Positions 1-34,390 of a stretch of 64,000 nt of DNA are shown one piece after another (the stretch's first letter is position 1; every line of letters begins with the position of its first letter). A program made the translations under genes and the position numbers. The stretch lies in contig NC_090399.1 of NCBI RefSeq assembly GCF_036365525.1, positions 66,334,862 through 66,398,861 of the forward strand, written 5' to 3'. The notes beneath the pieces were generated by a model. That model was given only the letters and a program-made list of their open reading frames with translations, was not told where the DNA came from and made no database searches. This stretch comes from Heterodontus francisci. Its lineage: Eukaryota.

Positions 1-3000
1 TTCCCTCGCTCTCAGTTCCCCCCTCACTCGTTCACTCACTATCAGTTCCCCCCTCACTCGTTCCCTCGCTCTCAGTTCCCCCTCACTCGTTCCCTCGCTC
101 ACGATTCCCCCCTCACTCGTTCACTCACTATCAGTTCCCCCCTCACTTGTTCCCTCGCTCTCAGTTCCCCCCTCACTCGTTCCCTCGCTCTCAGTTCCCC
201 CCTCACTCGTTCACTCACTATCAGTTCCCCCCTCACTCGTTCACTCACTATCAGTTCCCCCCTCACTCGTTCACTCACTATCAGTTTCCCCCTCACTCGT
301 TCCCTCGCTCTCAGTTCCCCCCTCACTCGTTCACACACTATCAGTTCCCCCCTCACTCGTTCCCTCGCTCTCAGTTCCCCCCTCACTCGTTCACTCGCTC
401 TCAGTTCCCCCCTCACTCGTTCACTCACTCTCAGTTCCCCCCTCACTCGTTCGCATCGCTCTCAGTTCCCCCCTCACTCGTTCCCTCGCTCTCAGTTCCC
501 CCCTCACTCGTTCCCTCGCTCTCAGTTCCCCCCTCACTCGTTCCCTCGCTCTCAGTTCCCCCCCTCACTCGTTCCCTCGCTCTCAGTTCCCCCCTCACTC
601 GTTCACTCGCTCTCAGTTCCCCCCTCACTCGTTCCCTCGCTCTCAGTTCCCCCCTCACTCGTTCGCTCACTCTCAGTTCCCCCCTCACTCGTTCGCTTCG
701 CTCTCAGTTCCCCCCTCACTCGTTCGCTCACTCTCAGTTCCCCCCTCACTCGTTCCCTCGCTCTCAGTTCCCCCTCACTCGTTCCCTCGCTCTCAGTTTC
801 CCCCCTCACTCGTTCCCTCGCTCTCAGTTTCCCCCCTCACTCGTTCGCTCACTCTCAGTTCCCCCCTCACTCGTTCGCTCACTCTCAGTTCCCCCCTCAC
901 TCGTTCCCAGGCTCTCAGTTCCCCCCTCACTCGTTCGCTCGCTCTCAGTTGCCCCCTCACTCGTTCCCTCGCTCTCAGTTGCCCCCTCACTCGTTCCCTC
1001 GCTCTCAGTTCCCCCCTCACTCGTTCCCTCGCTCTCAGTTCCCCCCTCACTCGTTCCCTCGCTCTCAGTTCCCCCCTCACTCGTTCCCTCGCTCTCAGTT
1101 CCCCCCACTCGTTCCCTCGCTCTCAGTTGCCCCCTCACTCGTTCCCTCGCTCTCAGTTCCCCCCTCACTCGTTCCCTCGCTCTCAGTTCCCCCCTCACTC
1201 GTTCCCTCGCTCTCAGTTCCCCCCTCACTCGTTCGCTCGCTCTCAGTTCCCCCCTCACTCGTTCGCTCGCTCTCAGTTCCCCCCTCACTCGTTCCCTCGC
1301 TCTCAGTTCCCCCCTCACTCGTTCCCTCGCTCTCAGTTCCCCCCTCACTCGTTCCCTCGCTCTCAGTTCCCCCCTCACTCGTTCCCTCGCTCTCAGTTCC
1401 CCCCTCACTCGTTCCCTCGCTCTCAGTTCCCTCCTCACTCGTTCCCTCGCACTCAGTTCCCCCCTCACTCGTTCCCAGGCTCTCAGTTCCCCCCTCACTG
1501 GTTCACTCACTCTCAGTTCCCCCCTCACTCGTTCACCCGCTCTCAGTTCCCCCCTCGCTCGTTCTCTCGCTCTCAGTTCCACCCTCGCTCATCCCCTCGC
1601 TCTCAGTTCCCCCCTCGCTCTCAGTTCCCCCCTCGCTCGTTCCCTCGCTCTCAGTTCCCCCCTCACTCGTTCCATCGCTCTCAGTTACCCCCTCACTCGT
1701 TCCCTCGCTCTCAGTTACCCCCTCACTCGTTCCTTCGCTCTCAGTTACCCCCTCACTCGTTCCCTCGCTCTCAGTTCCCCCCTCACTCGTTCACTCACTA
1801 TCAGTTCCCCCCTCACTCGTTCCCTTGCTCTCAGTTCCCCCCACACTCGTTCACACACTATCAGTTCCCCCCTCACTCGTTCCCTCGCTCTCAGTTCCCC
1901 CCTCACTCGTTCACTCACTATCAGTTCCCCCCTCACTCGTTCACTCACTATCAGTTGCCCCCTCACTCGTTCACTCACTTTCAGTTCCCCCCTCACTCGT
2001 TCACTCACTATCAGTTCCCCCCTCACTCGTTCCCTCGCTCTCAGTTCCCCCTCACTCGTTCCCTCGCTCTCAGTTACCCCCTCACTCGTTCACTCACTCT
2101 CAGTTCCCCCCTCACTCGTTCACTCACTCTCAGTTCCCCCCTCGCTCTCAGTTCCCCCCTCACTCTCAGTTCCCCCCTCACTCTCAGTTCCCCCCTCACT
2201 CGTTCGCTCACTCTCAGTTCCCCCCTCACTCGTTCGCTCACTCTCAGTTCCCCCCTCACTCGTTCGCTCACTCTCAGTTCCCTCCTCGCTCGTTCGCTCA
2301 CTCTCAGTTCCCCCCTCACTCGTTCGCTCACTCTCAGTTCCCCCCTCACTCGTTCGCTCACTCTCAGTTCCCCCCTCACTCGTTCGCTCACTCTCAGTTC
2401 CCCCCTCACTCGTCCCCTCGCTCTCAGTCCCCCCTCACCTGTTCCGTCGCTCTCAGTTCCCCGCTCACTCGTTCCCTCGCTCTCAGTTCCCCCCTCACTC
2501 GTTCTGTCGCTCTCAGTTCCCCCCTCACTCGTCCCCTCGCTCTCAGTTCCCCCCTCACTTGTTCCCTCGCTCTCAGTTCCCCCACACTCGTCCCCTCGCT
2601 CTCAGTTCCCCCCTCACCTGTTCTGTCGCTCTCAGTTCCCCCACACTCGTCCCCTCGCTCTCAGTTCCCCCCTCACTCGTCCCCTCGCTCTCAGTTCCCC
2701 CCTCACTCGTTCCCTCGCTCTCAGTTCCCCCCTCACCTGTTCTGTCGCTCTCAGTTCCCCCACACTCGTCCCCTCGCTCTCATTTCACCCCTCACTCGTT
2801 CCCTCGATCTCGATTCCCCCCTTACTCGTTCACTCACTATCAGTTCCCCTCTCACTCGTTCCCTCGCTCTCAGTTCCCCCCTCACTCGTTCCCTCGCTCT
2901 CAGTTCCCCCCTCACTCGTTCACACACTATCAGTTCCCCCCTCACTCGTTCCCTCGCTCTCAGTGCCCCCCTCACTCGTTCACTCACTATCAGTTCCCCC

Positions 3001-6000
3001 CTCACTCGTTCACTCACTATCAGTTCCCCCCTCACTCGTTCGCTCACTCTCAGTTCCCCCCTCACTCGTTCGCTCACTCTCAGTTCCCCCCTCACTCGTT
3101 CGCTCACTCTCAGTTCCCCCCTCACTCGTTCGCTCACTCTCAGTTCCCCCCTCACTCGTTCGCTCACTCTCAGTTCCCCCCTCACTCGTTCGCTCGCTCT
3201 CAGTTCCCACCTCACTCGTTCGCTCGCTCTCAGTTCCCCCCTCACTCGTTCGCTCGCTCTCAGTTCCCCCCTCACTCGTTCGCTCACTCTCAGTTCCCCC
3301 CTCACTCGTTCGCTCGCTCTCAGTTCCCCCCTCATTCATTCACTCACTCTCAGTTCCCCCCTCGCTCGTTCTCTCGCTCTCAGTTCCCCCCTCGCTCGTT
3401 CCCTCGCTCTCAGTTCCCCCCTCACTCGTTCCCGCGCTCTCAGTTCCCCCCTCACTCGTTCCCTCGCTCTCAGTTCCCCCCTCACTCGTTCCCTCGCTCT
3501 CAGTTACCCCCTCACTCGTTCACTCGCTCTCAGTTCCCCCCTCACTCGTTCACTCGCTCTCAGTTCCCCCCTCACTCGTTCACTCGCTCTCAGTTCCCCA
3601 CTCACTCGTTCCCTCGCTCTCAGTTCCCCCCTCACTCGTTCCCTCGCTCTCAGTTACCCCCTCACTCGTTCCCTCGCTCTCAGTTACCCCCTCACTCGTC
3701 CCCTCGTTCTCAGTTCCCCCCTCACTCGTTCCCTCGCTCTCAGTTCCCCCCTCACTCGTTCACACACTCTCAGTTCCCCCCTCACTCGTTCCCTCGCTCT
3801 CAGTTCCCCCCTCATTCATTCACTCACTCTCAGTTCCCCCCTCGCTCGTTCTCTCGCTCTCAGTTCCCCCCTCGCTCGTTCCCTCGCTCTCAGTTCCCCC
3901 CTCACTCGTTCCCTCGCTCTCAGTTCCCCCCTCACTCGTTCCCTCGCTCTCAGTTACCCCCTCACTCGTTCACTCGCTCTCAGTTCCCCCCTCACTCGTT
4001 CACTCGCTCTCAGTTCCCCCCTCACTCGTTCACTTCGCTCTCAGTTCCCCCCTCACTCATTCCCTCGCTCTCAGTTACCCCCTCACTCGTTCCCTCGCTC
4101 TCAGTTACCCCCTCACTCGTCCCCTCGTTCTCAGTTCCCCCCTCACTCGTTCCCTCGCTCTCAGTTCCCCCCTCACTCGTTCACACACTCTCAGTTCCCC
4201 CCTCACTCGTTCCCTCGCTCTCAGTTCCCCCCTCACTCGTTCCCTCGCTCTCAGTTCCCCCCTCACTCGTTCCCTCGCTCTCAGTTCCCCCCTCACTCGT
4301 TCCCTCGCTCTCAGTTCCCCCCTCACTCGTTCCCTCGCTCTCAGTTCCCCCCTCACTCGTTCACATCACTATCAGTTCCCCCCTCACTCGTTCCCTCGCT
4401 CTCAGTTCCCCCACTCGTTCCCTCGCTCACGATTCCCCCCTCACTCGTTCACTCACTATCAGTTCCCCCCTCACTCGTTCCCTCGCTCTCAGTTCCCCCC
4501 TCACTCGTTCCCTCGCTCTCAGTTCCCCCCTCACTCGTTCACACACTATCAGTTCCCCCCTCACTCGTTCCCTCGCTCTCAGTGCCCCCCTCACTCGTTC
4601 ACTCACTATCAGTTCCCCCTCACTCGTTCACTCACTATCAGTTCCCCCCTCACTCGTTCACTCACTATCAGTTCCCCCCTCACTCGTTCCCTCGCTCTCA
4701 GTTCCCCCCTCACTCGTTCCCTCGCTCTCAGTTACCCCCTCACTCGTTCACTCACTCTCAGTTCCCCCCTCACTCGTTCGCTCGCTCTCAGTTCCCCCCT
4801 CACTCGTTCGCTCGCTCTCAGTTCCCCCCTCACTCGTTCGCATCGCTCTCAGTTCCCCCCTCACTCGTTCCCTCGCTCTCAGTTCCCCCCTCACTCGTTC
4901 CCTCGCTCTCAGTTCCCCCCTCACTCGTTCCCTCGCTCTCAGTTCCCCCCTCACTCGTTCCCTCACTCTCAGTTCCCCCCTCACTCGTTCCCTCACTCTC
5001 AGTTCCCCCCTCACTCGTTCACTCACTATCAGTTCCCCCCTCACTCGTTCACTCACTCTCAGTTCCCCCCTCACTCGTTCACTCACTCTCAGTTCCCCCC
5101 TCACTCGTTCGCTCGCTCTCAGTTCCCCCCTCACTCGTTCGCTCACTCTCAGTTCCCCGCTCACTCGTTCCCTCGCTCTCAGTTCCCCCTCACTCGTTCC
5201 CTCACTCTCAGTTCCCCCCTCACTCGTTCACTCACTATCAGTTCCCCCCTCACTCGTTCACTCACTCTCAGTTCCCCCCTCACTCGTTCACTCACTCTCA
5301 GTTCCCCCCTCACTCGTTCGCTCGCTCTCAGTTCCCCCCTCACTCGTTCGCTCACTCTCAGTTTCCCCCTCACTCGTTCCCTCGCTCTCAGTTCCCCCTC
5401 ACTCGTTCCCTCGCTCTCAGTTTCCCCCCTCACTCGTTCGCTCACTCTCAGTTCCCCCTCACTCGTTCGCTCACTCTCAGTTCCCCCCTCACTCGTTCGC
5501 TCACTCTCAGTTCCCCCCTCACTCGTTCACTCACTATCAGTTCCCCCCTCACTCGTTCACTCACTATCAGTTCCCCCCTCACTCGTTCCCAGGCTCTCAG
5601 TTCCCCCCTCACTCGTTCCCTCGCTCTCAGTTCCCCCCTCACTCGTTCCCTCGCTCTCAGTTCCCCCCTCACTCGTTCCCTCGCTCTCAGTTCCCCCCTC
5701 ACTCGTTCCCTCGCTCTCAGTTCCCCCCTCACTCGTTCCCTCGCTCTCAGTTCCCCCCTCACTCGTTCCCTCGCTCTCAGTTCCCCCCTCACTCGTTCCC
5801 ACGCTCTCAGTTCCCCCCTCACTCGTTCCCACGCTCTCAGTTCCCCCCTCACTCGTTCGCTCGCTCTCAGTTCCCCCCTCACTCGTTCGCTCGCTCTCAG
5901 TTCCCCCCTCACTCGTTCCCTCGCTCTCAGTTCCCCCCTCACTCGTTCCCTCGCTCTCAGTTCCCCCCTCACTCGTTCCCTCGCTCTCAGTTCCCCCCTC

Positions 6001-9000
6001 ACTCGTTCCCTCGCTCTCAGTTCCCCCCTCACTCGTTCCCTCGCTCTCAGTTCCCCCTCACTCGTTCCCTCGCTCTCAGTTCCCCCCTCACTCGTTCCCT
6101 CGCTCTCAGTTACCCCCTCACTCGTTCCCTCGCTCTCAGTTCCCCCCTCACTCGTTCCCTCGCTCTCAGTTCCCCCCTCACTCGTTCCCTCGCTCTCAGT
6201 TCCCCCCTCACTCGTTCCCTCGCTCTCAGTTCCCTCCTCACTCGTTCCCTCGCACTCAGTTCCCCCCTCACTCGTTCCCAGGCTCTCAGTTCCCCCCTCA
6301 CTCGTTCGCTCACTCTCACTTCCCCCGTCACTGGTTCACTCACTCTCAGTTCCCCCCTCACTCGTTCACCCGCTCTCAGTTCCCCCCTCGCTCGTTCACC
6401 CGCTCTCAGTTCCCCCCTCGCTCGTTCTCTCGCTCTCAGTTCCCCCCTCGCTCGTTCCCTCGCTCTCAGTTCCCCCCTCGCTCATCCCCTCGCTCTCAGT
6501 TCCCCCCTCGCTCTCAGTTCCCCCCTCGCTCGTTCCCTCGCTCTCAGTTCCCCCCTCACTCGTTCCCTCGCTCTCAGTTACCCCCTCACTCGTTCCATCG
6601 CTCTCAGTTACCCCCTCACTCGTTCCCTCGCTCTCAGTTACCCCCTCACTCGTTCCCTCGCTCTCAGTTACCCCCTCACTCGTTCCCTCGCTCTCAGTTA
6701 CCCCCTCACTCGTTCCCTCGCTCTCAGTTCCCCCTCACTCGTTCACTCGCTCTCAGTTCCCCCCTCACTCGTTCCCTCGCTCTCAGTTACCCCCTCATTC
6801 GTCCCCTCGTTCTCGATTCCCCCCTCACTCGTTCACTCACTATCAGTTCCCCCCTCACTCGTTCCCTCGCTCTCAGTTCCCCCCTCACTCGTTCACACAC
6901 TATCAGTTCCCCCCTCACTCGTTCCCTCGCTCTCAGTTCCCCCCTCACTCGTTCACTCACTATCAGTTCCCCCCTCACTCGTTCACTCACTTTCAGTTCC
7001 CCCCTCACTCGTTCACTCACTATCAGTTCCCCCCTCACTCGTTCCCTCGCTCTCAGTTCCCCCTCACTCGTTCCCTCGCTCTCAGTTACCCCCTCACTCG
7101 TTCACTCACTCTCAGTTCCCCCCTCACTCGTTCACTCACTCTCAGTTCCCCCCTCGCTCTCAGTTCCCCCCTCGCTCTCAGTTCCCCCCTCACTCTCAGT
7201 TCCCCCCTCACTCTCAGTTCTCCCCTCACTCGTTCGCTCACTCTCAGTTCCCCCCTCACTCGTTCGCTCACTCTCAGTTCTCCCCTCACTCGTTCGCTCA
7301 CTCTCAGTTCCCCCCTCACTCGTTCGCTCGCTCTCAGTTCCCCCCTCACCTGTTCCGTCGCTCTCAGTTCCCCCCTCACTCGTTCCCTCGCTCTCAGTTC
7401 CCCCCTCACTCGTTCTGTCGCTCTCAGTTCCCCCCTCACTCGTTCCCTCGCTCTCAGTTCCCCCCTCACTCGTTCCCTCGCTCTCAGTTCCCCCCTCACC
7501 TGTTCTGTCGCTCTCAGTTCCCCCCTCACTCGTTCCCTCGCTCTCAGTTCCCCCCTCACTCGTTCTGTCGCTCTCAGTTCCCCCCTCACTCGTCCCCTCG
7601 CTCTCAGTTCCCCCCACACTCGTCCCCTCGCTCTCAGTTCCCCCCACACTTGTTCCCTCGCTCTTAGTTCCCCCCTCACCCGTTCACACGCTCTCAGTTC
7701 CCCCCTCACTCGTTCACTCACTATCAGTTCCCCCCTCACTCGTCCCCTCGCTCTCATTTCACCCCTCACTCGTTCCCTCGCTCTCAGTTCCCCCCTCACT
7801 CGTTCCCTCGCTCTCAGTTCCCCCCTCACTCGTTCACACACTATCAGTTCCCCCCTCACTCGTTCCCTCGCTCTCAGTGCCCCCCCTCACTCGTTCACTC
7901 ACTATCAGTTCCCCCCTCACTCGTTCACTCACTATCAGTTCCCCCCTCACTCGTTCCCTCGCTCTCAGTTCCCCCCTCACTCGTTCGCTCACTCTCAGTT
8001 CCCCCCTCACTCGTTCGCTCGCTCTCAGTTCCCCCCTCACTCGTTCGCTCGCTCTCAGTTCCCCCCTCACTCGTTCGCTCACTCTCAGTTCCCCCCTCAC
8101 TCGTTCGCTCACTCTCAGTTCCCCCCTCACTCGTTCCCTCGCTCTCAGTTCCCCCCTCACTCGTTCCCTCGCTCTCAGTTCCCCCCTCACTCGTTCCCTC
8201 GCTCTCAGTTCCCCCCTCACTCGTTCCCTCGCTCTCAGTTCCCCCCTCACTCGTTCCCTCGCTCTCAGTTTCCCCCCTCACTCGTTCGCTCACTCTCAGT
8301 TCCCCCCTCACTCGTTCGCTCACTCTCAGTTCCCCCCTCACTCGTTCACTCACTATCAGTTCCCCCCTCACTCGTTCCCAGGCTCTCAGTTCCCCCCTCA
8401 CTCGTTCGCTCGCTCTCAGTTCCCCCCTCACTCGTTCCCTCGCTCTCAGTTCCCCCCTCACTCGTTCCCTCGCTCTCAGTTCCCCCCTCACTCGTTCGCT
8501 CACTCTCAGTTCCCCCCTCACTCGTTCCCACGCTCTCAGTTCCCCCCTCACTCGTTCGCTCGCTCTCAGTTCCCCCCTCACTCGTTCGCTCGCTCGCAGT
8601 TCCCCCCTCACTCGTTCCCTCGCTCTCAGTTCCCCCCTCACTCGTTCCCTCGCTCTCAGTTCCCTCCTCACTCGTTCCCTCGCACTCAGTTCCCCCCTCA
8701 CTCGTTCCCAGGCTCTCAGTTCCCCCCTCACTCGTTCGCTCACTCTCACTTCCCCCCTCACTCGTTCGCTCGCTCTCAGTTCCCCCCTCGCTCGTTCACA
8801 CCGCTCTCAGTTCCCCCCTCGCTCGTTCTCTCGCTCTCAGTTCCCCCCTCGCTCGTTCCCTCGCTCTCAGTTCCACCCTTGCTCATCCCCTCGCTCTCAG
8901 TTCCCCCCTCGCTCTCAGTTCCCCCCTCACTCGTTCACCCGCTCTCAATTCCCCCCTCACTCGTTCACTTCGCTCTCAGTTCCCCCCTCACTCGTTCCCT

Positions 9001-10970
9001 CTCTCTCAGTTCCCCCCTCACTCGTCCCCTTGCTCTCAGTTCCCCCCTCACTCGTCCCCTTGCTCTCAGTTCCCCCCTCACTCGTTCCCTCTCTCTGTTC
9101 CCCCCTCACTCGTTCCCTCGCTCTCAGTTCCCCCCTCACCTGTTCAGTCGCTCTCAGTTCCCCCCTCACTCGTTCCCTCACTCTCAGTTACCCCCTCACT
9201 CACTCACTCACTCTCAGTTCCCCCCTCACTCGTTCGCTCGCTCTCAGTTCCCCCTCACTCGTTCTCAGTTCCCCCCTCACTCGTTCCCTCGCTCTCAGTT
9301 CCCCCCTCACTCGTTCCCTCTCTCACAGTTCCCCCCTCACTCGTTCACTCACTCTCAGTTCCCCCCTCACTCGTTCACTCACTCTCAGTTCCCCCCTCAC
9401 TCGTTCACTCACTCTCAGTTCCCCCCTCACTCGTTCACTCACTCTCATTTCCCCCCTCACTCGTTCACTCACTCTCAGTTCCCCCCTCACTCGTTCACTC
9501 ACTCTCAGTTCCCCCCTCACTCGTTCACTCACTGTCATTTCCCCCCTCACCCCTTCACTCACTCTCATTTCCCCCCTCACTCGTTCACTCACTCTCAGTT
9601 CCCCCCTCACTCGTTCACTCACTCTCAGTTCCCCTCTCACTCGTTCACTCACTCTCAGTTCCTCTCTCACTCCTTCACTCACTCTCAGTTCCCCCCTCAC
9701 TTGTTCACTCACTCTCAGTTCCCCCCTCACTCCTTCACTCACTCTCAGTTCCCCCCTCACTCGTTCCCTTGCTCTCAGTTCCCCCCTCACTCGTTCCCTC
9801 TCTCACAGTTCCCCCCTCACTCGTTCACTCACTCTCAGTTCCCCCCTCACTCTTTCACTCACTCTCATTTCCCCCCTCACTCGTTCACTCACTCTCAGTT
9901 CCCCCCTCACTCGTTCACTCACTGTCATTTCCCCCCTCACTCGTTCGCTCACTCTCTGTTCCCCCCTCACTCTTTCACTCACTCTCATTTCCCCCCTCAC
10001 TCGTTCACTCACTCTCAGTTCCCCCCTCACTCGTTCACTCACTGTCATTTCCCCCCTCACCCCTTCACTCACTCTCATTTCCCCCCTCACTCGTTCACTC
10101 ACTCTCAGTTCCCCCCTCACTCGTTCACTCGCTCTCAGTTCCCCCCTCACTCGTTCACTCGCTCTCAGTTCCCCCCTCACTCGTTCACACGCTCTCAGTT
10201 CCCCCCTCACTCGTTCCCTCGCTCTTAGTTCCCCCCTCACTCGTTCCCTCGCTCTCAGTTCCCCCCTCACTCGTTCACTCGCTCTCAGTTCCCCCCTCAC
10301 TCGTTCCCTCGCTCTCATTTCCCCCCTCACCCCTTCACTCACTCTCAGTTCCCCCCTCACTCGTTCACTCACTCTCAGTTCCCCCCTCACTCGTTCACTC
10401 ACTCTCAGTTCCCCTCTCACTCCTTCACTCACTCTCAGTTCCCCTCTCACTCCTTCACTCACTCTCAGTTCCCCCCTCACTCCTTCACTCACTCTCATTT
10501 CCCCCCTCACTCCTTCACTCTCATTTCCCCCCTCACTCCTTCACTCACTCTCAGTTTCTCCCTCACTCGTTCACTCACTCTCAGTTCCCCCCTCACTCGT
10601 TCACTCACTCTCAGTTCCCCTCTCACTCCTTCACTCACTCTCAGTTCCCCTCTCACTCCTTCACTCACTCTCAGTTCCCCCCTCACTCCTTCACTCACTC
10701 TCATTTCCCCCCTCACTCCTTCACTCTCATTTCCCCCCTCACTCCTTCACTCACTCTCAGTTTCTCCCTCACTCCTTCACTCACTCTCAGTTCCCCCCTC
10801 ACTCCTTCACTCACTCTCAGTTCCCCCCTCACTCCTTAACTCACTCTCAGTTTATCCCTCACTCGTTCACTCACTCTCAGTTACCCCCCTCCCTCCTTCA
10901 CTCACTCTCAGTTCCCCCCTCACTCCTTCACTCACTCTCAGTTCCCCCCTCACTCTCAGTTACTCCCCTC
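1..10970. repeat. 30-bp minisatellite in MHC intron 3 (ctcagttcccccctcactcgttccctcgct), about 365 copies, runs off the window start
   Basis: 30-nt periodicity is directly visible. The + strand is C/T-rich. This array explains the multi-thousand-aa ORFs. Confidence 0.98.
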
Positions 10971-10974
10971 ACTC

Positions 10975-11250
10975 ACCCTCTCCTCCTCCGTCACAGTCCG
11001 TTCCCTCATTCACTCACTCACCTTCACCCTCACTCCACCTCCCCCTCAATCACTCTCACTCTCTCCTCCTCCGTCACTGTCCCTTCCCTCATTCACTCAC
11101 TCACCTTCACCCTCACTCCACCTCCCCCTCAATCAATCTCACTCTCTCCTCCTCCGTCACAGTCCGTTCCCTCATTCATTCACTCACCTTCACCTTCACC
11201 CTCACTCCACCTCCCCCTCAATCCCTCTCACTCTCTCCCCTCACTCACTC
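10975..11250. repeat. About 3 copies of an ~85-bp CT-rich unit next to the exon 3 donor
   Basis: ctcctcctccgtcac...tcaccttcaccctcactccacctccccctcaatc recurs three times. Confidence 0.8.
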
Positions 11251-11258
11251 TCACTCAC

Positions 11259-11531
11259 CGGGTCTCAGTTCTCTTTCTCCCAGTTTCAGGTATTTCTTCA
11301 GCCACTCGATGCAGATTCCCTCCAGGTAACCCTTCACCTGCTGGCCCAGGGCCTTGTTCTGATCCCACTTGTTCTTGGTGATCTCTCCCCAGGTGAGCGG
11401 GGTCACCCACACCATGTTCTCCTTGTCGAAGTTGATATAATCTTTCCCGTCCCAGCCGTACTGGAAAAACCCCCCGGTGCTGCCGTCATCCCGCAGTTCA
11501 CAGCCGTACATGATCTGCCAGGTGTGTATCC
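11259..11531 (-). CDS. UAA: MHC class I exon 3, alpha2 domain (GIHTWQIMYGCELRDDG...TKNKW...GYLEGICIEWLKKYLKLGERELRP)
   Basis: 273 nt with acceptor cattaacag| and donor G|GTGAGT, after a 117-nt intron 2. Contains both alpha2 cysteines, DGKDY, and the T143/K146/W147, Y159, W167 and Y171 equivalents. Confidence 0.97.
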
Positions 11532-11648
11532 CTGTTAATGAGAGAGAATCACATCCCAGATCACTGGATCATTCAATCCCCATTCCCACATTCCCCACAT
11601 CCCCCATTCCCGGACTGATCCCGGGTGATGAGACTGAGAGACACTCAC

Positions 11649-11909
11649 CGGCAGACTGGTTAGTCCGCTCCGTCAGGATCTGAATAGCGACCTTCCCGCC
11701 CTGCTCCCAGCCCAGCGCGATCTGTGTCTGCTGCTCCCAGTAATCCGGACCCTGAGTCTCCGCCATCCACCTCTGCCGAGGCATCATCTTCTTCTGATCA
11801 CTGTTATACTGAACAAACTCCATCTCATCCACATAACCGACCACAACAAACTCCGGGAGACCGGGAATCGGGGTCATTGAGGTGTAGAAATACCGCAGAG
11901 AGTGAGAAT
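11649..11909 (-). CDS. UAA: MHC class I exon 2, alpha1 domain (DSHSLRYFYTSMTPIPGLPEFVVVGYVD...GPDYWEQQTQI...ERTNQSA)
   Basis: 261 nt bounded by the acceptor tgtgtttcag| and the donor G|GTGAGT, phase 1 at both ends. Carries the class I hallmarks SHSLRYF, PEF..VGYVD, DYW (Y59), R84 and an N-Q-S glycosylation site. Confidence 0.97.
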
Positions 11910-13895
11910 CTGAAACACAGAGACAGGGTTAGAATAGAGACTGAACCAGACACAGAAATAAATCCAACACAATCCCCACCCTGCACCCAGCTCTGTGTAT
12001 CTGTGTCTGTCTCTCCCAGTACTCGGGGTCTAGACACAGTGAGAGACTGAAACACAGAGACAGGGTTAGAATAGAGACTGAACCAGACACAGAAATAAAT
12101 CCAACACAATCCCCACCCTGCACCCAGCTCTGTGTATCTGTGTCTGTCTCTCCCAGTACTCGGGGTCTAGACACAGTGAGAGAGTGAAACACAGAGACAG
12201 GGTTAGAATAGAGACTGAACCAGACATAGAAATAAATCCAACACAATCCCCACCCTGCACCCAGCTCTGTGTATCTGTGTCTGTCTCTCCCAGTACTCGG
12301 GGTCTAGACACAGTGAGAGACTGAAACACAGAGACAGGGTTAGGATAGAGACTGAACCAGACATTCAAATAAATCCAACATAATCCCCACCCTGCACCCA
12401 GCTCTGTGTATCTGTGTCTGTCTCTCCCAGTACTCGGGGTCTAGACACAGTGAGAGACTGAAACACAGAGACAGGGTTAGAATAGAGACTGAACCAGACA
12501 TAGAAATAAATCCAACATAATCCCCACCCTGCACCCAGCTCTGTGTATCTGTGTCTGTCTCTCCCAGTACTCGGGGTCTAGACACAGTGAGAGACTGAAA
12601 CACAGAGACAGGGTTAGAATAGAGACTGAACCAGACACAGAAATAAATCCAACATAATCCCCACCCTGCACCCAGCTCTGTGTATCTGTGTCTGTCTCTC
12701 CCAGTACTCGGGGTCTAGACACAGTGAGAGACTGAAACACAGAGACAGGGTTAGAATAGAGACTGAACCAGACACAGAAATAAATCCAACATAATCCCCA
12801 CCCTGCACCCAGCTCTGTGTATCTGTGTCTGTCTCTCCCAGTACTCGGGGTCTAGACACAGTGAGAGACTGAAACACAGAGACAGGGTTAGGATAGAGAC
12901 TGAACCAGACATTCAAATAAATCCAACATAATCCCCACCCTGCACCCAGCTCTGTGTATCTGTGTCTGTCTCTCCCAGTACTCGGGGTCTAGACACAGTG
13001 AGAGACTGAAACACAGAGACAGGGTTAGAATAGAGACTGAACCAGACATAGAAATAAATCCAACACAATCCCCACCCTGCACCCAGCTCTGTGTATCTGT
13101 GTCTGTCTCTCCCAGTACTCGGGGTCTAGACACAGTGAGAGATTGAAACACAGAGACAGGGTTAGAATAGAGACTGAACCAGACACAGAAATAAATCCAA
13201 CATAATCCCCACCCTGCACCCAGCTCTGTGTATCTGTGTCTGTCTCTCCCAGTACTCGGGGTCTAGACACAGTGAGAGAATGAAACACAGAGACAGGGTT
13301 AGAATAGAGACTGAACCAGACACAGAAATAAATCCAACACAATCCCCACCCTGCACCCAGCTCTGTGTATCTGTGTCTGTCTCTCCCAGTACTCAGAGTC
13401 TAGACACAGTGAGAGACTGAAACACAGAGACAGGGTTAGAATAGAGACTGAACCAGACATAGAAATAAATCCAACACAATCCCCACCCTGCACCCAGCTC
13501 TGTGTATCAGTGTCTGTCTCTCCCAGTACTCGGGGTCTAGACACAGTGAGAGACTGAAACACAGAGACAGGGTTAGAATAGAGACTGAACCAGACACAGA
13601 AATAAATCCAACACAATCCCCATCCTGCACCCAGCTCTGTGTATCAGTGTCTGTCTCTCCCAGTACTCGGGGTCTAGACACAGTGAGAGACTGAAACACA
13701 GAGACAGGGTTAGAATAGAGACTGAACCAGACACAGAAATAAATCCAACACAATCCCCACCCTGCACCCAGCTCTGTGTATCAGTGTCTGTCTCTCCCAG
13801 TACTCGGGGTCTAGACACAGTGAGAGACTGAAACACAGAGACAGGGTTAGAATAGAGACTGAACCAGACACAGAAATAAATCCCAACACAATCCC
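11910..13895. repeat. 137-bp tandem array (14 full units + 1 partial) at the 3' end of intron 1
   Basis: The ctgaaacacagagacagggtt marker recurs from 11910 to 13828 in exact 137-nt steps (14 x 137 = 1918). Confidence 0.97.
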
Positions 13896-13929
13896 TGGAG
13901 ACTCGGGTCCGCTCACAATGAATGCTGTC

Positions 13930-15012
13930 AGTAATATAAAATTGGTTGGCAGACAGGAAACAAGGAGTGGGAATGGCAGGCAGTGACTACTGGGGTACCG
14001 CAGGGATGGGTGCTAGGACCCCAGCTATTCACAATATAGATTAATGATTTAGATGAGGGAACTAAATGTAATATCTCCAGATTTGCAGATGACACAAAAC
14101 TGGGTGGGAGGGTGAGTTGTGAGGAGGATGCAGAGAAGCTTCAGGGTGATTTGGACAAGTTGAGTGAGTGGGCAAATGCATGGCAGGTGCAGTATAATGT
14201 GGATAAATGTGAGGTTATCCACTTTGGTAGCAAAAACAGGAAGGCAGATTATTATCTGAATGGCTGTTAGCTGGGACTGGGAATATACAGCGAGACCTGG
14301 GTGTTCTCGTACACCAGTCGCTGAAGGTAAGCATGCAGGTGCAACAGGCGATAAAAAAGGCAAATGGTATGTTGGCCTTCATAGCGAGAGGATTCGAGTA
14401 CAGGAGCAGGGATGTCTTGCTGCAATTATACAGGACCTTGGTGAGGCCACACCTGGAATATTGTGTGCAGTTTTGGTCTCCTTATCTGAGGAAGGATGTT
14501 CTTGCTATAGAGGGAGTGCAGCGAAGGTTTACCAGACTGATTCCTGGGATGGCGGGACTGATGTATGAGGAGAGATTTTGTTGGTTAGGATTATATTCAC
14601 TGGAGTTCAGAAGATTGAGGGGGGATTCATAGAAACCTATTAAATTCTAACAGGACTTGACAGGGTAGATGCAGGAAGGATGTTCCCGATGGTGGGGGAG
14701 TCCAGAACCAGGGGTCATAGTCTAAGGATACGGGGTAAACCTTTCGGGACTGAGATGTGGAGAAATTTCTTCACCCAGAGAGTGGTGAGCCTGTGGAATT
14801 CGCGACCACAGAAAGCAGTTGAGGCCAAAACATTTATGTTTTCAAGAAGGAGTTAGATTTTGCTCTTGGGGTGAAAGGGATCAAAGAGTATGGGGCAAAA
14901 GTGGGAACAGGTTACTGAGTTGGATGATCAGCCATGATCATCATGAATGGCGGAGCAGGCTCAAAGGGCCGAATGGCCTACTCCTGCTCCTATTTTCTAT
15001 GTTTCTATGTAA
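13930..15012 (+). mobile_element. 5'-truncated CR1 LINE (RT C-terminus + 3' tail)
   Basis: GVPQG/FADDTKLGG region, [15 protein letters not shown], and the tail ggcctactcctgctcctattttctatgtttctatg. Contains stops and frameshifts. Confidence 0.93.
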
Positions 15013-15059
15013 TAGGCCGAGACTTTGGCCCAGTCACATTGAACACCGTATGAGTGAGA

Positions 15060-16696
15060 GGAGTCTGGGGTAACTCACCCACTGGCAGACTGAGGGTGAG
15101 GGGTCTGGGGTAACTCACCCACTGACAGACTGAGGGTGAGGGGTCTGGAGTAACTCACTGACAGACTGAGGGTGAGGGGTCTGGTGTAACTCACTGACAG
15201 ACTGAGGGTGAGGGGTCTGGGGTAACTCACTGACAGACTGAGGGTGTGGGGTCTGGGGTAACTCACTGACAGACTGAGGGTGAGGGGTCTGGGGTAACTC
15301 ACTGACAGACTGAGGGTGTGGGGTCTGGGGTAAACACCCACTGACAGACTGAGGGTGAGGGGTCTGGGGTAACTCACTGACAGACTGAGGGTGAGGGGTC
15401 TGGGGTAACTCACTGACAGACTGAGGGTGTGGGGTCTGGGGTAAACACCCACTGACAGACTGAGGGTGAGGGGTCTGGGGTAAACACCCACTGACAGACT
15501 GAGGGTGAGGGTTCTGGGGTAACTCACTGACAGACTGAGGGTGAGGGGTCTGGGGTAAACACCCACTGAAAGACTGAGGGTGAGGGGTCTGGGGTAACTC
15601 ACCCACTGACAGACTGAGGGTGAGGGGTCTGGGGTAAACACCCACTGACAGACTGAGGGTGAGGGGTCTGGGGTAAACACCCACTGACAGACTGAGGGTG
15701 AGGGGTCTGGGGTAACTCACTGACAGACTGAGGGTGAGGGGTCTGGGGTAAACACCCACTGAAAGACTGAGGGTGAGGGGTCTGGGGTAAACACCCACTG
15801 AAAGACTGAGGGTGAGGGGTCTGGGGTAACTCACCCACTGACAGACTGAGGGTGAGGGGTCTGGGGTAAACACCCACTGACAGACTGAGGGTGAGGGGTC
15901 TGGGGTAACTCACTGACAGACTGAGGGTGAGGGGTCTGGGGTAACTCACTGACAGACTGAGGGTGAGGGGTCTGGGGTAAACACCCACTGACAGACTGAG
16001 GGTGTGGGGTCTGGGGTAAACACCCACTGACAGACTGAGGGTGTGGGGTCTGGGGTAAACACCCACTGAAAGACTGAGGGTGAGGGGTCTGGGGTAACTC
16101 ACCCACTGACAGACTGAGGGTGAGGGGTCTGGGGTAAACACCCACTGACAGACTGAGGGTGAGGGGTCTGGGGTAACTCACTGACAGACTGAGGGTGAGG
16201 GGTCTGGGGTAAACACCCACTGACAGACTGAGGGTGAGGGGTCTGGGGTAAACACCCACTGAAAGACTGAGGGTGAGGGGTCTGGGGTAACTCACCCACT
16301 GACAGACTGAGGGTGAGGGGTCTGGGGTAAACACCCACTGACAGACTGAGGGTGAGGGGTCTGGGGTAACTCACTGACAGACTGAGGGTGAGGGGTCTGG
16401 GGTAACTCACTGACAGACTGAGGGTGAGGGGTCTGGGGTAACTCACTGACAGATTGAGGGTGAGGGGTCTGGGGTAAACACCCACTGACAGACTGAGGGT
16501 GAGGGGTCTGGGGTAACTCACTGACAGACTGAGGGTGAGGGGTCTGGGGTAACTCACTGACAGACTGAGGGTGAGGGGTCTGGGGTAAACACCCACTGAA
16601 AGACTGAGGGTGAGGGGTCTGGGGTAAACACCCACTGACAGACTGAGGGTGAGGGGTCTGGGGTAACTCACTGACAGACTGAGGGTGAGGGGTCTA
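15060..16696. repeat. 36/39/40-bp G-rich minisatellite (gggtctggggtaactcactgacagactgagggtgag and variants)
   Basis: Visible tandem units with three interspersed length variants. Confidence 0.96.
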
Positions 16697-18460: not shown

Positions 18461-19380
18461 GGGAGGAGGCTCGACGTACAGGTATCTCTACAGGGTCTGA
18501 AGGAGGAGACTCGACGTACAGGTATCTCTGCAGGGTCTGAAGGAGGAGGCTCGACGTACAGGTATCTCTGCAGGGTCTGAAGGAGGAGGCTCGACGTACA
18601 GGTATCTCTGCAGGGCCTGAAGGAGGAGGCTCGACGTACAGGTATCTCTGCAGGGTCTGAAGGAGGAGACTCGACGTACAGGTATCTCTGCAGGGTCTGA
18701 CGGAGGAGACTCGACGTACAGGTATCTCTGCAGGGTCTGAAGGAGGAGACTCGACGAACAGGTATCTCTGCAGGGTCTGACGGAGGAGACTCGACATACA
18801 GGTATCTCTGCAGGGTCTGAAGGAGGAGGCTCGACGTACAGGTATCTCTGCAGGGTCTGACGGAGGAGACTCGACGTACAGGTATCTCTGCAGGGTCTGA
18901 AGGAGGAGGCTCAACGTACAGGTATCTCTGCAGGGTCTGAAGGAGGAGGCTCGACGTACAGGTATCTCTGCAGGGCCTGAAGGAGGAGGCTCGACGTACA
19001 GGTATCTCTGCAGGGTCTGACGGAGGAGACTCGACGTACAGGTATCTCTGCAGGGTCTGACGGAGGAGACTCGACGTACAGGTATCTCTGCAGGGTCTGA
19101 AGGAGGAGGCTCAACGTACAGGTATCTCTGCAGGGTCTGAAGGAGGAGGCTCGACGTACAGGTATCTCTGCAGGGCCTGAAGGAGGAGGCTCGACGTACA
19201 GGTATCTCTGCAGGGTCTGAAGGAGGAGGCTCGACGTACAGGTATCTCTGCAGGGTCTGACGGAGGAGACTCGACGTACAGGTATCTCTGCAGGGTCTGA
19301 CGGAGGAGACTCGACGTACAGGTATCTCTGCAGGGTCTGAAGGAGGAGACTCGACGTACAGGTATCTCTGCAGGGTCTGA
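18461..19380. repeat. 40-bp minisatellite, 23 copies (ggaggaggctcgacgtacaggtatctctgcagggtctgaa)
   Basis: Exact 40-nt periodicity over 920 nt with no indels. Confidence 0.98.
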
Positions 19381-19499
19381 ATGTGGAAAGTCTCTGCCTC
19401 ACCAGAATTTACAGCAGCACAAGTGAATTCCGAAGTAATACCCGTAAACTGAACATAATTAAACCCTCAATTAATCGACAATTAATACCAAGCATTCGA

Positions 19500-19994: not shown

Positions 19995-21861
19995 CAGCCT
20001 GGCACCAAAACCCGCTCAGACCCCAATACCAACTGACCAAGGGTTAATACCCCAGTACACAGCCTGGCACCAAACCCGCTCAGACCCCAATACCAACTGA
20101 CCAAGGGTTAATACCCCAGTACACAGCCTGGCACCAAACCCGCTCAGACCCCAATACCAACTGACCAAAGGTTAATACCCCAGTACACAGCCTGGCATCA
20201 AACCCGCTCAGACCCCAATACCAACTGACCAAGGGTTAATATCCCAGTACACAGCCTGGCACCAAAACCCGCTCAGACCCCAATACCAACTGAGCAAGGG
20301 TTAATATCCCAATACACAGCCTGGCACCAAACCCGCTCAGACCCCAATACCAACTGACCAAGGGTTAATACCCCAGTACACAGCCTGGCATCAAACCCGC
20401 TCAGACCCCAATACCAACTGACCAAGGGTTAATATCCCAATACACAGCCTGGCACCAAACCCGCTCAGACCCCAATACCAACTGACCAAGGGTTAATACC
20501 CCAGTACACAGCCTGGCACCAAAACCCGCTCAGACCCCAATACCAACTGACCAAGGGTTAATACCCCAGTACACAGCCTGGCACCAAACCCGCTCAGACC
20601 CCAATACCAACTGACCAAGGGTTAATACCCCAGTACACAGCCTGGCACCGAAACCCGCTCAGACCCCAATACCAACTGAACAAGGGTTAATACCCCAGTG
20701 CACAGCCTGGCACCAAAACCCGCTCAGACTCCAATACCAACTGACCAAGGGTTAATAACCCAGTACACAGCCTGGCACCAAACCCGCTCAGACCCCAATA
20801 CCAACTGAACAAGGGTTAATACCCCAGTACACAGCCTGGCACCAAACCCGCTCAGACCCCAATACCAACTGAACAAGTGTTAATACCCCAGTACGCAGCC
20901 TGGCACCAAAACCCGCTCAGACCCCAATACCAACTGACCAAGGGTTAATACCCCAGTACACAGCCTGGCACCAAACCCGCTCAGACCCCAATACCAACTG
21001 ACCAAGGGTTAATACCCCAGTACACAGCCTGGCACCAAACCCGCTCAGACCCCAATACCAACTGACCAAGGGTTAATACCCCAGTACACAGCCTGGCACC
21101 AAAACCCGTTCAGACCCCAATACCAACTGACCAAGGATTAATACCCCGATACACAGCCTGGCACCAAAACCCGCTCAGACCCCAATACCAACTGACCAAG
21201 GGTTAATACCCCAGTACACAGCCTGGCACCAAACCCGTTCAGACCCCAAAACAAACTGACCAAGGGTTTTTTTTTTATTTAGAGATACAGCACTGAAACA
21301 GGCCCTTCGGCAAACCGAGTCTGTGCCGACCAACAACCACCCATTTATACTAACCCTACAGTAATCCCATATTCCCTATCACCTACCTACACTATGGGCA
21401 ATTTACAACGGCCAATTTACCTATCACCTGCAAGTCTTTTGGCTGTGGGAGGAAACCGGAGCACCCGGCGAAAACCCACGCAGACACAGGGAGAACTTGC
21501 AAACTCCGCACAGGCAGTACCCAGAATCGAACCCGGGTCCCTGGAGCTGTGAGGCTGTGGCGCTAACCACTGCGCCACTGTGCTCAGACCCCAAAACCAA
21601 CTGACCAAGGGTTAATACCCCAGTACACAGCCTGGCACTGAGACCCTCTCAGATCCCATTACCCACTGACTGAGGGTTAATACCCCAGTACACAGCTTGG
21701 CACTGAGACCCTCTCAGTCCCCATTACCCACTGACCGAGGGTTAATACCCCAGTACACAGCCTGGCACTGAGACCCTCTCAGACCCCATTACCCACTGAC
21801 TGAGGGTTAATACCCCAGTACCCAGTCTGGCACTGAGACCCTCTCAGTCCCCATTACCCAC
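19995..21861. repeat. 64/65-bp minisatellite beginning at the exon 1 splice donor, split by a SINE
   Basis: Unit cagcctggcaccaaacccgctcagaccccaataccaactgaccaagggttaataccccagtaca. A variant subtype lies to the right of the SINE. Confidence 0.96.
21269..21583 (-). mobile_element. Full-length HE1-like V-SINE with A-rich tail
   Basis: A box tggcgcagtgg, B box ggttcgattc, V-domain gggtgctccggtttcctcccaca, CR1-derived tail and poly(A). Flanked by a ~30-bp direct repeat. Confidence 0.92.
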
Positions 21862-21910
21862 CTGCAGAGACCCCTCCACACAGAAGGACGAACACTGTCA
21901 GTCCAATCAT
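21862..21910 (-). CDS. UAA: MHC class I heavy chain exon 1 (leader peptide MIGLTVFVLLCGGVSA + 1 nt)
   Basis: Minus strand reads ATGATTGGACTGACAGTGTTCGTCCTTCTGTGTGGAGGGGTCTCTGCAG|GTGGGT. This is a hydrophobic 16-aa signal peptide ending VSA with a phase-1 donor, which joins exon 2 (G|AT = Asp). It lies just downstream of the SXY/CCAAT promoter. Not in the ORF track (too short). Confidence 0.9.
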
Positions 21911-22080
21911 TGCTGCTTGACTCGATGGGCTGCCAATCATTTCCCAAGAAACTGTCTTCTCTCTGTCCGTGAGTTGTACCCAGTCTGGATCCTGATCCTT
22001 CTGGACTGTGTCTGTGCCCAGAACTATATGTCTGTGCCCTTTACCCAGGGCTGGTTGTATGAATCACAGAAACCTCCAGA

Positions 22081-22324: not shown

Positions 22325-24620
22325 GGAAGAACATTAGGAACAGGAGGAGGTCAATGAGCCCCTTCAGGCCCACTTCACCATTCACTCCCTCAGGCCCACT
22401 CCTCCATTCACACCCTCAGACCCACTCCTCCATTCACCCCCTTAGATCCACTCCTCCATTCACCCATTCAGGCCCACTCCTCCATTCACCCCTTCAGGCC
22501 CACTTCACCATTCACCTCCTCAGGCCCACTCCTCCATTCACTCCCTCAGACCCACTCCTCCATTCACCCACTCAGACCCACTCCTCCATTCACCCCTTCA
22601 GGCCCACTTCACCATTCACCTCCTCAGGCCCACTCCTCCATTCACTCCCTCAGACCCACTCCTCCATTCACCTCCTCAGGCCCACTCCTCCATTCACTCC
22701 CTCAGACCCACTCCTCCATTCACCCCCTCAGGCACACTCCTCCATTCACCTCCTCAGACCCACTCCTCCATTCACCCCCTCAGACCCACTCCTCCATTCA
22801 CCCCCTCAGGCACACTCCTCCATTCACCCTCTCAGGCCCACTCCTCCATTCACCCCCTCAGACCCACTCCTCCATTCACCCCCTCAGACCCACTCCTCCA
22901 TTCACCCCAGCAGGCCCACTTCACCATTCACCTCCTCAGGCCCACTCCTCCATTCACTCCCTCAGACCCACTCCTCCATTCACCTCCTCAGGCCCTCTCC
23001 ACCATTCACCCCCTCGGACCCACTCCTCCATTCACCCCCTCACGCCTGCTCCACCCTTCACCCCCTTGGGCCTGCTCCACCATTCACCCTCTTGGACCCA
23101 CTCCTCAATTCACCTCAGGCACACTCCTCCATTCACCTCCTCAGGCCCACTCCTCCATTCACCCTCTCAGGCCCACTCCTCCATTCACCCCCTCAGGCAC
23201 ACTCCTCCATTCACCTCCTCAGGCCCACTCCTCCATTCACCCCCTCAGGCCCACTCCTCCATTCACCCCCTCAGACCCACTCCTCCATTCACCCCCTCAG
23301 GCCCACTCCTCCATTCACCCCCTCAGACCCACTCCTCCATTCACCTCCTCAGGCCCTCTCCACCATTCATCCCCTCGGACCCACTCCACTATTCACCCTC
23401 TTGGGCCCACGCCTCCATTCACCCCCTCAGGCCCACTCCTCCATTCACCCCCTCAGGCCCACTCCTCCATTCACCTCCTCAGGCCCACTCCTCCATTCAC
23501 CTCCTCAGGCCCTCTCCACCATTCTCCCTCTTGGGCCCAATCGTCCATTCACCCCCTCAGGCCCACTCCTCCATTCACCCCCTCACGCCTGCTCCACCAT
23601 TCACCCCCTTGGGCCTGCTCCACCATTCACCCTCTTGGGCCCACTCCTCCATTCACCCCCTCAGGCCCGCTCCTCCATTCACCCCCTCAGGCCCACTCCT
23701 CCATTCACCCCCTCAGGCCCACTCCTCCATTCACCTCCTCAGGCCGTCTCCACCATTCACCCCCTCGGACCCACTCCTCCATCCACCCCCTCGGACCCAC
23801 TCTACCATTCACCCTCTTGGGCCCACTCCTCCATTCACCCCCTCAGGCCCACTCCTCCATTCACCCCCTCAGGCCCACTCCTCCATTCACCTCCTCAGGC
23901 CATCTCCTCCATTCAGCTCCTCAGGCCCTCTCCACCATTCACCCTCTTGGGCCCAATCGTCCATTCACCCCCTCAGGCCCACTCCTCCATTCACCCCTCA
24001 CGCCTGCTCCACCATTCACCCCCTTGGGCCTGCTCCACCATTCACCCTCTTGGGCCCACTCCACCATTCACCCCCTTGTGCCCGCTCCTCCATTCACCTC
24101 CTCAGGCCCACTCTCCATTCACTCCCTCGAACCCTCTCCTCCATTCACCCGCTCGGGCCCACTCCTCAATTCACCCCCATTGGGCCTGCACTGTCATTCA
24201 GCCCCCCGGGCCTGCTCTGCCAGTCAATCAGATCCTGGCTGATCCATTTAACTGCCTTTACTCCATATCCTTTATCCAATAAAAATCTCTGATTGTTCCC
24301 ACCATCCCCAGCCTTTTTGGTTGACAGTTACAGGTTTCTACTCCCCTTTGTGTGAAAGTAGTTTCACCGTCTCTACCCTATCGAATCCTGTCAATATTAG
24401 TTCACCCTCAACTTTCCACACTCCAGGGATTACAACCCAGGTTTATACAACCTCCCTGTACAGCCCAGTATCATTCTGGTGAATCGACACCCCCTCCAAG
24501 ACCAATCTATCCTTCCTGTGATATGGTACCCAGGGCTGAACACAGTTCCCCAAATGTGGATCTGACCCAGGCTCTGTCCAGCTGGAGTATAATTAACTCC
24601 TCTGTATTCCCATCTCCTCG
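22325..24620 (-). mobile_element. Old minus-strand CR1 3' end hosting the 26-bp array
   Basis: Left flank aacattaggaacaggaggagg and right flank cattcagccc...cctgctctgcc..tcaatcagatcctggctgatc match the reverse-complemented CR1 tail. IHIWGTVFSP is a remnant of [12 protein letters not shown]. Confidence 0.7.
22355..24215. repeat. 26-bp C-rich minisatellite (caggcccactcctccattcaccccct), about 70 copies
   Basis: 26-nt periodicity, which gives the 26-aa three-frame cycle in ORF 22354..24282. Confidence 0.95.
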
Positions 24621-31660: not shown

Positions 31661-31984
31661 ATGATTCAGGTCATGATACCCAGTGACACGGTTGCTGTGT
31701 TTGTCTATAAAATAACAGTGACTACATTTCAGATAATTCACAGACTGGGAGGCACATGAGGACATGAACGGTGCACGATAGCATCGAGTTTCAACAACAT
31801 CTTTTCAAACATAGCTCAGGGACTTTCCAACAGCGATAAAAACAAGGGAGGGGCAGGGAGAAACCAACTGTGTGCGAGAGTCCAAAAACAACGAGACTGC
31901 AAAAGAGGCGTGTGAGGAGAGAGTGAGCAGGGTCAAAGAGTAATGTGACTGGATAGAAACAGGTGACTGTATTACAGAACAATG

Positions 31985-33565: not shown

Positions 33566-34390
33566 TTCTGGAAATTCTTCCCCCACTCTGTCTGGTGGAA
33601 CATTGGCGGGGGGTGCGGGGGGGGGCGGGGGAGTAAATGCTGTCCAGGATGTTCTGAGAGGCAAGTTTGCCACATTTGAAAAGGACAAACAAAAGGCATC
33701 ATTTAGCCGTGTTTGGAGCAGGAGTTAGTCGATTTGTGTAGTCGATTTTATAGCAGAGCACTTACTGAACAGTGGTAGAATTGGGCAGAGTGAGCATGGA
33801 TTTACAAAGCCAATGAATGTGGTTTATTTGGACTTTCAGAATTCCTTCGACAAATTCCCACAGAAGTGATTAGCATGTAAAATTAAAGTGCATAGGATTG
33901 GGGGTAGTGCATTGCGATGGATAGAAAATTGGTTGGCAGACAGGAAACAAAGAGTAGGGATAAATGGGTCTTTTTCCGAATGGCAGGCAGTGACTAGTGG
34001 GGTACCGCAGTGATCGGTGTTAGGACCCCAGCTATTCACAATATATATTAATGATTTAGATGAGGGAACTAAATGTAATATCTCCAAATTTGCAGATGAC
34101 ACAAAACTGGGTGGGAGGGTGAGTTGTGAGGAGGATGCAAAGAGGCTTCAGGGTAATTTGGACAAGTTGAGTGAGTGGGCAAATGCATGGCAGATGCAGT
34201 ATAATGTGGATAAATGTGAGAGTATCAAATTTGGTAGCAAAAACAGGAAGGCAGATTATTGTCTGAAAGGCTATAAACTGAGAGAGGGGAATATGCAGCG
34301 AGACCGGGGTGTTCTTGTACACCAGTCGCTGAAGGTAAGCATGCGGATGCAACAGGCGGTAAAAAAGGCAAATGGTATGTTGGCCTTCAT

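Follow-up and report, generated by a model that had tools for sequence, protein, structure and literature searches.

A probable mirage-type minisatellite at the alpha1 acceptor of an MHC class I gene in the shark Heterodontus francisci

Why should the end of an intron, together with scraps of an exon, be repeated fourteen times directly ahead of the real splice site, and do the copies do anything for the gene that carries them? The question is posed by a 64,000-nucleotide (nt) stretch of the Heterodontus francisci genome (assembly GCF_036365525.1, contig NC_090399.1, positions 66,334,862 to 66,398,861; hereafter the window, whose own numbering is used throughout). [quoted passage not shown] An earlier note, made from the letters alone, had described this array and had seen in it either the fossil of another allele or a bank of donors for gene conversion. 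We consider it quite probable that the array is a minisatellite of the kind called mirage, which arose in intron 1 by a tandem duplication across the intron-exon border and was then internally deleted and amplified. No function of the array is shown by the evidence presented below.

Structure of the array and source of its exon part

Tandem Repeats Finder (TRF) returned a single array (Table 1) of 14.6 copies, with 98% matches and 0% indels. When the array was cut in register, 14 full units and a partial 15th were obtained, and the partial unit was seen to be the authentic end of intron 1 as it runs into the real exon, cag/ATTCTCACTCTCTGCGG (slashes mark exon borders here and below). The repeats stand head to tail, they are of minisatellite size and the authentic border is found at their end, as in mirages. 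No open reading frame (ORF) spans the whole array, the longest ORFs being of 105-108 amino acids, and no Rfam family was found within 11000-15000.

On the minus strand each 137-nt unit is composed of three parts, namely 65 nt of the end of intron 1 (...CTAACCCTGTCTCTGTGTTTCAG), 17 nt resembling the start of the exon (TCTCTCACTGTGTCTAG), and a 55-nt fragment of the alpha1 helix whose 3' end reads GCAGGGTGGG in each unit. The authentic 65-nt intron end and the unit consensus show 0 differences, and their identity ends exactly at the AG. To assess the homology of the remaining 72 nt, hereafter the cassette, to the real exon, 2000 dinucleotide-preserving shuffles of this exonic part served as the null. 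The local alignment of cassette and exon scores 49, while the shuffles scored 16.6 +/- 2.5 with a maximum of 31, so that 0 of the 2000 reached 49 and the match lies about 13 standard deviations above shuffled sequence. In a global alignment 45 of the 55 aligned columns are identical, with three 1-nt gaps; the longest exact matches to the adjacent exon are 9 and 11 nt. Upon translation the helix fragment gives DPEYWERQTQIHR, a 1-nt indel and then WVQGG, where the real exon has GPDYWEQQTQIALGWEQGG. The earlier note had spoken of 14 alpha1 pseudo-exon cassettes in tandem, directly upstream of the real alpha1 exon, of a three-part unit and of these same translations, all of which TRF, in-register cutting and the sequence itself bear out. 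The likeness which it had counted by eye, ungapped, at ~40/57, and for which it had proposed a shuffling test, proved to be significant.

A simple possibility is that the resemblance is due to chance, or that the array is an artefact of assembly, for the region is rich in repeats and the likeness was first judged by eye. This was rejected as next to impossible. No shuffle reached the alignment score, and the junction between one unit and the next was found under four organism labels, in contig sets independent of one another, in three of the four as a 167-nt contig, that is, 137 + k-1. Since the junction recurs in this manner, an assembly artefact is ruled out.

To judge by its letters, the cassette is not a copy of the exon that is now its neighbour. 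It starts TC-TCTCAC, where the adjacent exon starts AT-TCTCAC. In addition, a 12-codon open stretch within it (PEYWERQTQIHR; the helix fragment reads PEYWERQTQI) agrees at 10 of 12 positions with other functional class I chains and at 8 of 12 with the adjacent exon. Chains with 10 of 12 matches include the H. francisci paralog P0214, UAA of Triakis, a white shark protein and a frog protein, the relatives having been obtained by a representative search and by a further search that started from Triakis scyllium UAA (P0003). Because the peptide is nearer to other class I chains than to its own neighbour, the scrap was probably derived from a paralog, an ancestor or a different allelic lineage. 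The two facts may be accommodated in either of two ways, that the source differed from the beginning, or that the adjacent exon was swapped later by recombination. An internally deleted alpha1 copy from a different or older allele or paralog, as the earlier note had it, is supported by the exon start and by the 10/12 against 8/12, and its reading of the array as a fossil of such an allele or paralog, amplified into a minisatellite, was a fair one and is upheld in essence.

Leader-joined alpha1 exons starting TC-TCTCAC, as in the cassette, were present in the RNA contigs of X5 (organism A) and X12 (organism C), with loose ends at 11907. In this second class of spliced transcript alpha1 starts Val-Ser-His (TC-TCTCAC), against Asp-Ser-His (AT-TCTCAC) in the window gene (11907-11909), and the class represents another allele or a paralog.

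Splicing of the host gene and turnover of the decoy acceptors

The host belongs to the MHC class I genes of classical type, and its expression is high. Its alpha1 and alpha2 exons, searched singly and not as a joined spliced model, each contain a PF00129 (MHC_I) domain, and they match the H. francisci protein P0159 (class I histocompatibility antigen, F10 alpha chain-like, 353 amino acids) at 86/86 and 90/90 residues, respectively. P0159 is a full-length class I chain, which also carries a C1-set domain (PF07654) and, by direct reading, retains the usual peptide-terminus residues; its N-terminus, MIGSPSSQAAMIGLTVFVLLCGGVSA, matches the leader exon. With both exon domains, the usual exon phases and spliced RNA contigs, the gene has what is expected of a class I heavy chain. 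From the limits of the alpha1 exon it follows that the acceptor G is at 11910, which corrects the earlier note, and the position of the leader exon (21940/21910-21862) gives intron 1 a length of ~9.95 kb. Two in-frame ATGs are present in the leader exon (21940 and 21910), with ATTGG after each. The annotation of P0159 starts at the upstream one (21940), by which its leader exceeds those of other shark class I chains by 10 residues.

The RNA and DNA evidence consisted of Logan contigs from four runs, which were placed on 11257-12111 (1.5 units) and in which the array collapses to one unit. In X5, the assembly's own sample, which is RNA-like, the exons have a depth of 2-6e5, the depth of intron 2 is zero and the contig joints skip it. 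At 11912 the contigs have loose ends whose sequence is exactly that of 21865-21889 in the leader exon, and therefore exon 1 is joined by splicing to the authentic acceptor. For the unit there is one 167-nt contig with a depth of 56, about 1e-4 of the exon depth, which is the level expected of unspliced precursor. No leader-to-cassette junction was observed among the listed RNA contig joints, the contigs being from tissue competent for nonsense-mediated decay (NMD). These results indicate that regular splicing is undisturbed by the array, with the reservation that contigs omit rare variants. Were a decoy to be used in the phase of exon 1, the transcript would read V-SHCV-stop. It is likely that exon definition, which we infer, explains the choice of the real site. 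The real acceptor would be picked since it is followed by a full exon with a strong donor, CCG/GTGAGT (by direct reading, 8/9 to the 5' splice-site consensus), whereas the cassettes end in a weak donor-like AGG/GTGGGG (6/9).

One decoy acceptor is found per unit. The G of the decoy AG lies at 12047, 12184, 12321, 12458, 12595, 12732, 12869, 13006, 13143, 13280, 13417, 13554, 13691 and 13828. The 29 nt ahead of the acceptor occur in 15 copies, including the authentic site, and the AG is kept in 11 of the 14 decoys; the other three were destroyed, each by a different base (12184 G>C, 13143 G>A and 13280 G>T). Only 12 variant site/base states exist across the 14 units. Four of them are in the helix fragment, all within units 1-4, and units 5-14 are identical there. 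Units 8 and 12, which are four units apart, have four variants in common, and units 1-3 have one. Such a pattern of sharing reflects ordinary local duplication, typical of minisatellite turnover. Under a uniform model the probability of three hits on some site is ~0.011, and that of three hits on one of the two AG sites is ~1.5e-4, figures that are post hoc and come from a small sample. The AG losses give a hint that the decoys may carry a small cost and that weak selection may act against them.

Under three further organism labels the unit was found to be 97-99% alike. The unit junction was present in 167-nt contigs of organism B (2 differences) and organism D (DNA run X13, 3 differences), while organism C yielded a 154-nt contig running from cassette through the intron part to cassette, with 4 differences, in which the in-frame TAG reads CAG. 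Alpha1 exon contigs from B and C have 34 and 23 letter differences, and that of B also has 6 gaps, on the same intron end. Absence of the array from other species had been named in the earlier note as a sign of a neutral relic, and such absence was not what was observed. In organism D (X13) short unit variants at 12032-12065, where the decoy acceptor meets the beginning of the cassette, show 4 differences in 31 nt, at a depth of 23-43 against 3.8 for the window-like unit; the commonest unit of this organism probably differs at the decoy splice site.

Formation of the array and alternative explanations

The order of events that we infer is as follows. A tandem duplication would have covered the border of intron 1 with an alpha1 exon, taking in 65 nt on the intron side and about 215 nt on the exon side. 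The truncated upstream copy would then have lost ~140 nt of its interior, by which the exon start was fused to the helix segment (~56-74 in human leukocyte antigen (HLA) numbering). Unequal exchange or replication slippage would have raised the 137-nt product to its 14 copies and would keep these uniform; the same exchange or slippage would also hold the authentic intron end to the sequence of the units.

Several observations weigh against this account. Among the expressed contigs and the protein relatives, none was found to be an allele or paralog that matches the cassette. In addition, 3 of the 12 variant states fall on a decoy acceptor G, so that the array would not be strictly neutral. The unit is 97-99% alike across organism labels while the alpha1 exon contigs differ by 9-13%, which could mean constraint; the same contrast would equally arise where introns are homogenised, exon lineages are old and sharks mutate slowly, and the exons may be paralogs. 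Furthermore, since contigs drop rare variants, the decoys might be used at a low level.

A different possibility is that the array serves splicing. The cassettes might act as 67-nt poison exons (cag/TCTCTC..., AGG/GTGGGG) whose in-frame TAG leads to NMD, and the decoy acceptors might thereby tune class I output or slow the removal of intron 1. Such a role would be consistent with the complete acceptor, identical to the real one, in 11 of 14 decoys, with the premature in-frame stop after SHCV, with the cassette end GCAGG/GTGGGG, which resembles the exon 1 donor GCAG/GTGGGT, and with the conservation of the unit under other organism labels. That the acceptor G was lost three times independently (P ~1.5e-4, post hoc) would further suggest that the spliceosome sees the decoys. 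However, what these losses indicate is a cost and not a kept function, and the TAG reads CAG in organism C. The low RNA depth of the unit relative to the exon, with no leader-to-cassette junction listed, also speaks against such a role, as do the amphioxus and human F7 arrays described below, which are silent in normal splicing. Therefore, it seems improbable that the array is kept as a set of poison exons. A role in recombination is also improbable. Minisatellites with a G-rich core are associated with meiotic exchange, and the array, with its G-rich core-like unit end GCTGGGTGCAGGGTGGGG, may form a hotspot beside the alpha1 exon, whereby exchange of this exon between haplotypes would be favoured and intron 1 homogenised. 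That the authentic intron end equals the units up to the AG and that the identity stops at the first exon base would agree with this, as would the divergent alpha1 exon of organism B (34 differences, 6 gaps) on the same intron end. But ordinary intron homogenisation together with balancing selection on the exons gives the same pattern, and the window is so full of unrelated arrays that none needs a role.

The earlier note had also put forward that the array might be a cis-linked bank of donors, from which micro-gene-conversion would act on the polymorphic alpha1 helix after the manner of chicken immunoglobulin pseudogenes. The cassette is indeed homologous to a groove-lining stretch, it differs from the exon at the equivalents of positions 56, 58, 62, 67, 68 and 71, and the cassettes lie only 66 nt to 2 kb from their would-be target. 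Against this, the 14 helix fragments hardly vary (4 variant states, all within units 1-4, and none in units 5-14), and because of this they form no bank of diversity; each of them has a 1-nt indel inside, and exact matches to the exon are of 11 nt at most. Nor do the recipients bear traces of conversion. The adjacent exon is without the cassette tract, the cassette depth in RNA contigs of three organisms is that of the single array contig, with no expressed exon having a cassette-like helix, and of the 10 listed helix-region exon variants, a small sample, 0 move to the cassette state in gapped alignment. The sole partial agreement is at an Arg codon, where the cassette has GAGAGA and organisms B and C have GAGAGG, and this codon is common in shark class I genes. 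A donor bank is therefore very unlikely, and the proposal is not supported. A broader idea would be that the array is maintained across horn shark species and seeds alpha1 exchange, as a hotspot or as a template for short-tract conversion with the consensus 'ERQTQI' helix, and that the class I genes of this genome share border arrays derived from splice sites. We hold it to be quite unlikely; the presence of the unit under other labels is by itself no demonstration of function or constraint. Preferably, then, the array is explained by duplication across the border, internal deletion and amplification.

Neighbouring repeats and comparison with known systems

The 137-bp array is one of 14 separate tandem arrays in the window. 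Their periods range over 23-137 bp, and introns 1 and 3 consist for the most part of such arrays. The 65-bp array at the opposite end of intron 1 repeats the exon 1 donor three more times (decoy GTGGGTAATGG, GT at 21796, 21731 and 21666). By its sequence it is a donor-side mirage, the mirror image of the 137-bp acceptor array. Intron 3 (window 1-11258, minus strand) begins gtgagtgagagtgagtga and leads at once into an 83-bp x 3.2 array, so that arrays abut the alpha2 donor; after it comes a 30-bp satellite of >10.9 kb, which fills the intron and has GTGAG-rich motifs like the intron start. The alpha3 exon is outside the window. Four intron ends are in view, and arrays adjoin three of them, two of these arrays demonstrably copying the splice site, and intron 2 is the sole intron border region here without one. 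Because the window holds 14 arrays, some of which abut the exon 1 and alpha2 donors, the formation of arrays at exon borders is common here. By the listed coordinates, about half of the window is tandem repeat.

The unique intron DNA that supplied the unit is bounded by the interspersed-repeat fragment that lies upstream of the array (Table 1). Further copies of this repeat, 70-89% alike, are found at 33921-34390, 60273-60999 and 25928-26662. ORFs beside some of the copies resemble reverse-transcriptase fragments.

Table 1. Features of the window around the 137-bp array and elsewhere, with the evidence for each.
Feature	Position	Strand	Evidence and remarks
137-bp tandem array, 14 full units and a partial 15th	11901..13895	- (sense)	TRF and in-register cutting
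Last full unit	11975..12111	-	equals unit consensus, 0 differences
Intron 1 3'-end copy in last full unit	12047-12111	-	CTAAC branch-point-like motif, pyrimidine tract, AG
Exon-derived cassette in last full unit	11975-12046	-	72 nt
Exon-start copy TCTCTCACTGTGTCTAG	12030..12046	-	follows cag/; true exon has ATTCTCACTCTCTGCGG
Alpha1-helix fragment	11975..12030	-	homologous to exon ~11695-11748; alignment and translations
14 decoy acceptors, one per unit	12047..13829	-	29-nt pattern search and variant table
Authentic alpha1 exon, 261 nt, phase 1-1, SHSLRYFYT...NQSA	11649..11909	-	Pfam MHC_I 1e-24; RNA contigs
Intron 2, 117 nt	11532..11648	-	zero RNA contig depth; contig joints skip it
Alpha2 exon, 273 nt	11259..11531	-	Pfam MHC_I 6.5e-25; contig loose ends at 11259 and 11532
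Leader exon, coding part	21862..21940	-	donor cag/gtgggt, GT at 21861-21860; RNA contig loose ends equal 21865-21889
65-bp x 4.3 array	21583..21861	-	TRF, sequence, pattern search; starts exactly at exon 1 donor
Interspersed-repeat fragment	13934..14700	.	38 nt upstream of the array; blastn against the window
39-bp array	15051-16695
40-bp array	18462-19381
64-bp array	19995-21268
26-bp array	22359-24178
27-bp array	30203-31660
51-bp array	31983-33565
91-bp satellite, 16.4 kb	41266-57708		higher order 454 bp, 93% matches

Most mirages described previously were from amphioxus, and a single human case, located at a donor, is their counterpart. They are now met in a jawed vertebrate and at both ends of one intron, in a host that is among the most highly expressed and most polymorphic genes of the shark. 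In the literature on shark MHC intron minisatellites and on shark class I gene conversion, no precedent was found for an exon-fragment array in an MHC gene. The array constitutes a natural test of 3' splice-site choice, since 14 decoys have the same branch point, tract and AG as the real site and three of them were independently inactivated. The cassette keeps alpha1 sequence that is lost from the neighbouring exon, and it could thus help to date exon exchange between MHC lineages. Gene prediction and the typing of alleles can also be led astray by such arrays. On the present evidence they do not reveal a new way in which MHC diversity is generated.

The chicken immunoglobulin pseudo-V arrays, and MHC micro-gene-conversion as in the mouse H-2K mutants templated by Q-region genes, depend on donors that are diverse and long enough to pair. 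The shark cassettes are like such donors in being truncated, promoterless copies of a polymorphic coding segment, located in cis near the expressed gene. They are unlike them in that the 14 fragments scarcely differ from one another, have a length of 55 nt and carry a frameshift; nor was any acceptor found to have been converted.

In human F7 IVS7, the first unit of a 37-bp variable number tandem repeat (VNTR) spans the exon 7 donor, and the identical pseudo-sites are silent (PMC1557585). The shark array is likewise a vertebrate minisatellite over an exon-intron border, and the 65-bp array at the other end of the intron is the direct counterpart of the F7 repeat. The two systems differ, however, in that F7 repeats 5' splice sites, of which the authentic one is met first in the 5'-3' direction, whereas the 137-bp array repeats 3' sites and has the authentic one last. 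Because the authentic site is last, a rule of scanning for the first site fails for the 137-bp array, and exon definition would be likelier.

The closest likeness is to the mirages of amphioxus. In the globin gene BflGb6 these have units of 150-160 bp in 3-6 copies, each made of an intron 3' end and an exon 5' part, with the splice signals duplicated, splicing normal and the units evolving in concert (PMC3087553, PMC3902484). The shark array shares with them the head-to-tail units of intron end and exon start, the authentic border in last place, the duplicated AG, normal splicing and the concerted evolution of the units. Length polymorphism and somatic instability have been shown for Adh3. In contrast to the amphioxus cases, the shark array resides in a vertebrate MHC class I gene and has 14 copies; its exon part is internally deleted, so that the start of the exon runs into a helix segment from ~140 nt further on, and is 18-30% different from the neighbouring exon. 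The array thus belongs to the known mirage kind, and what is particular to it is the internally deleted exon part, the MHC host and the position of the decoys upstream of the authentic acceptor.

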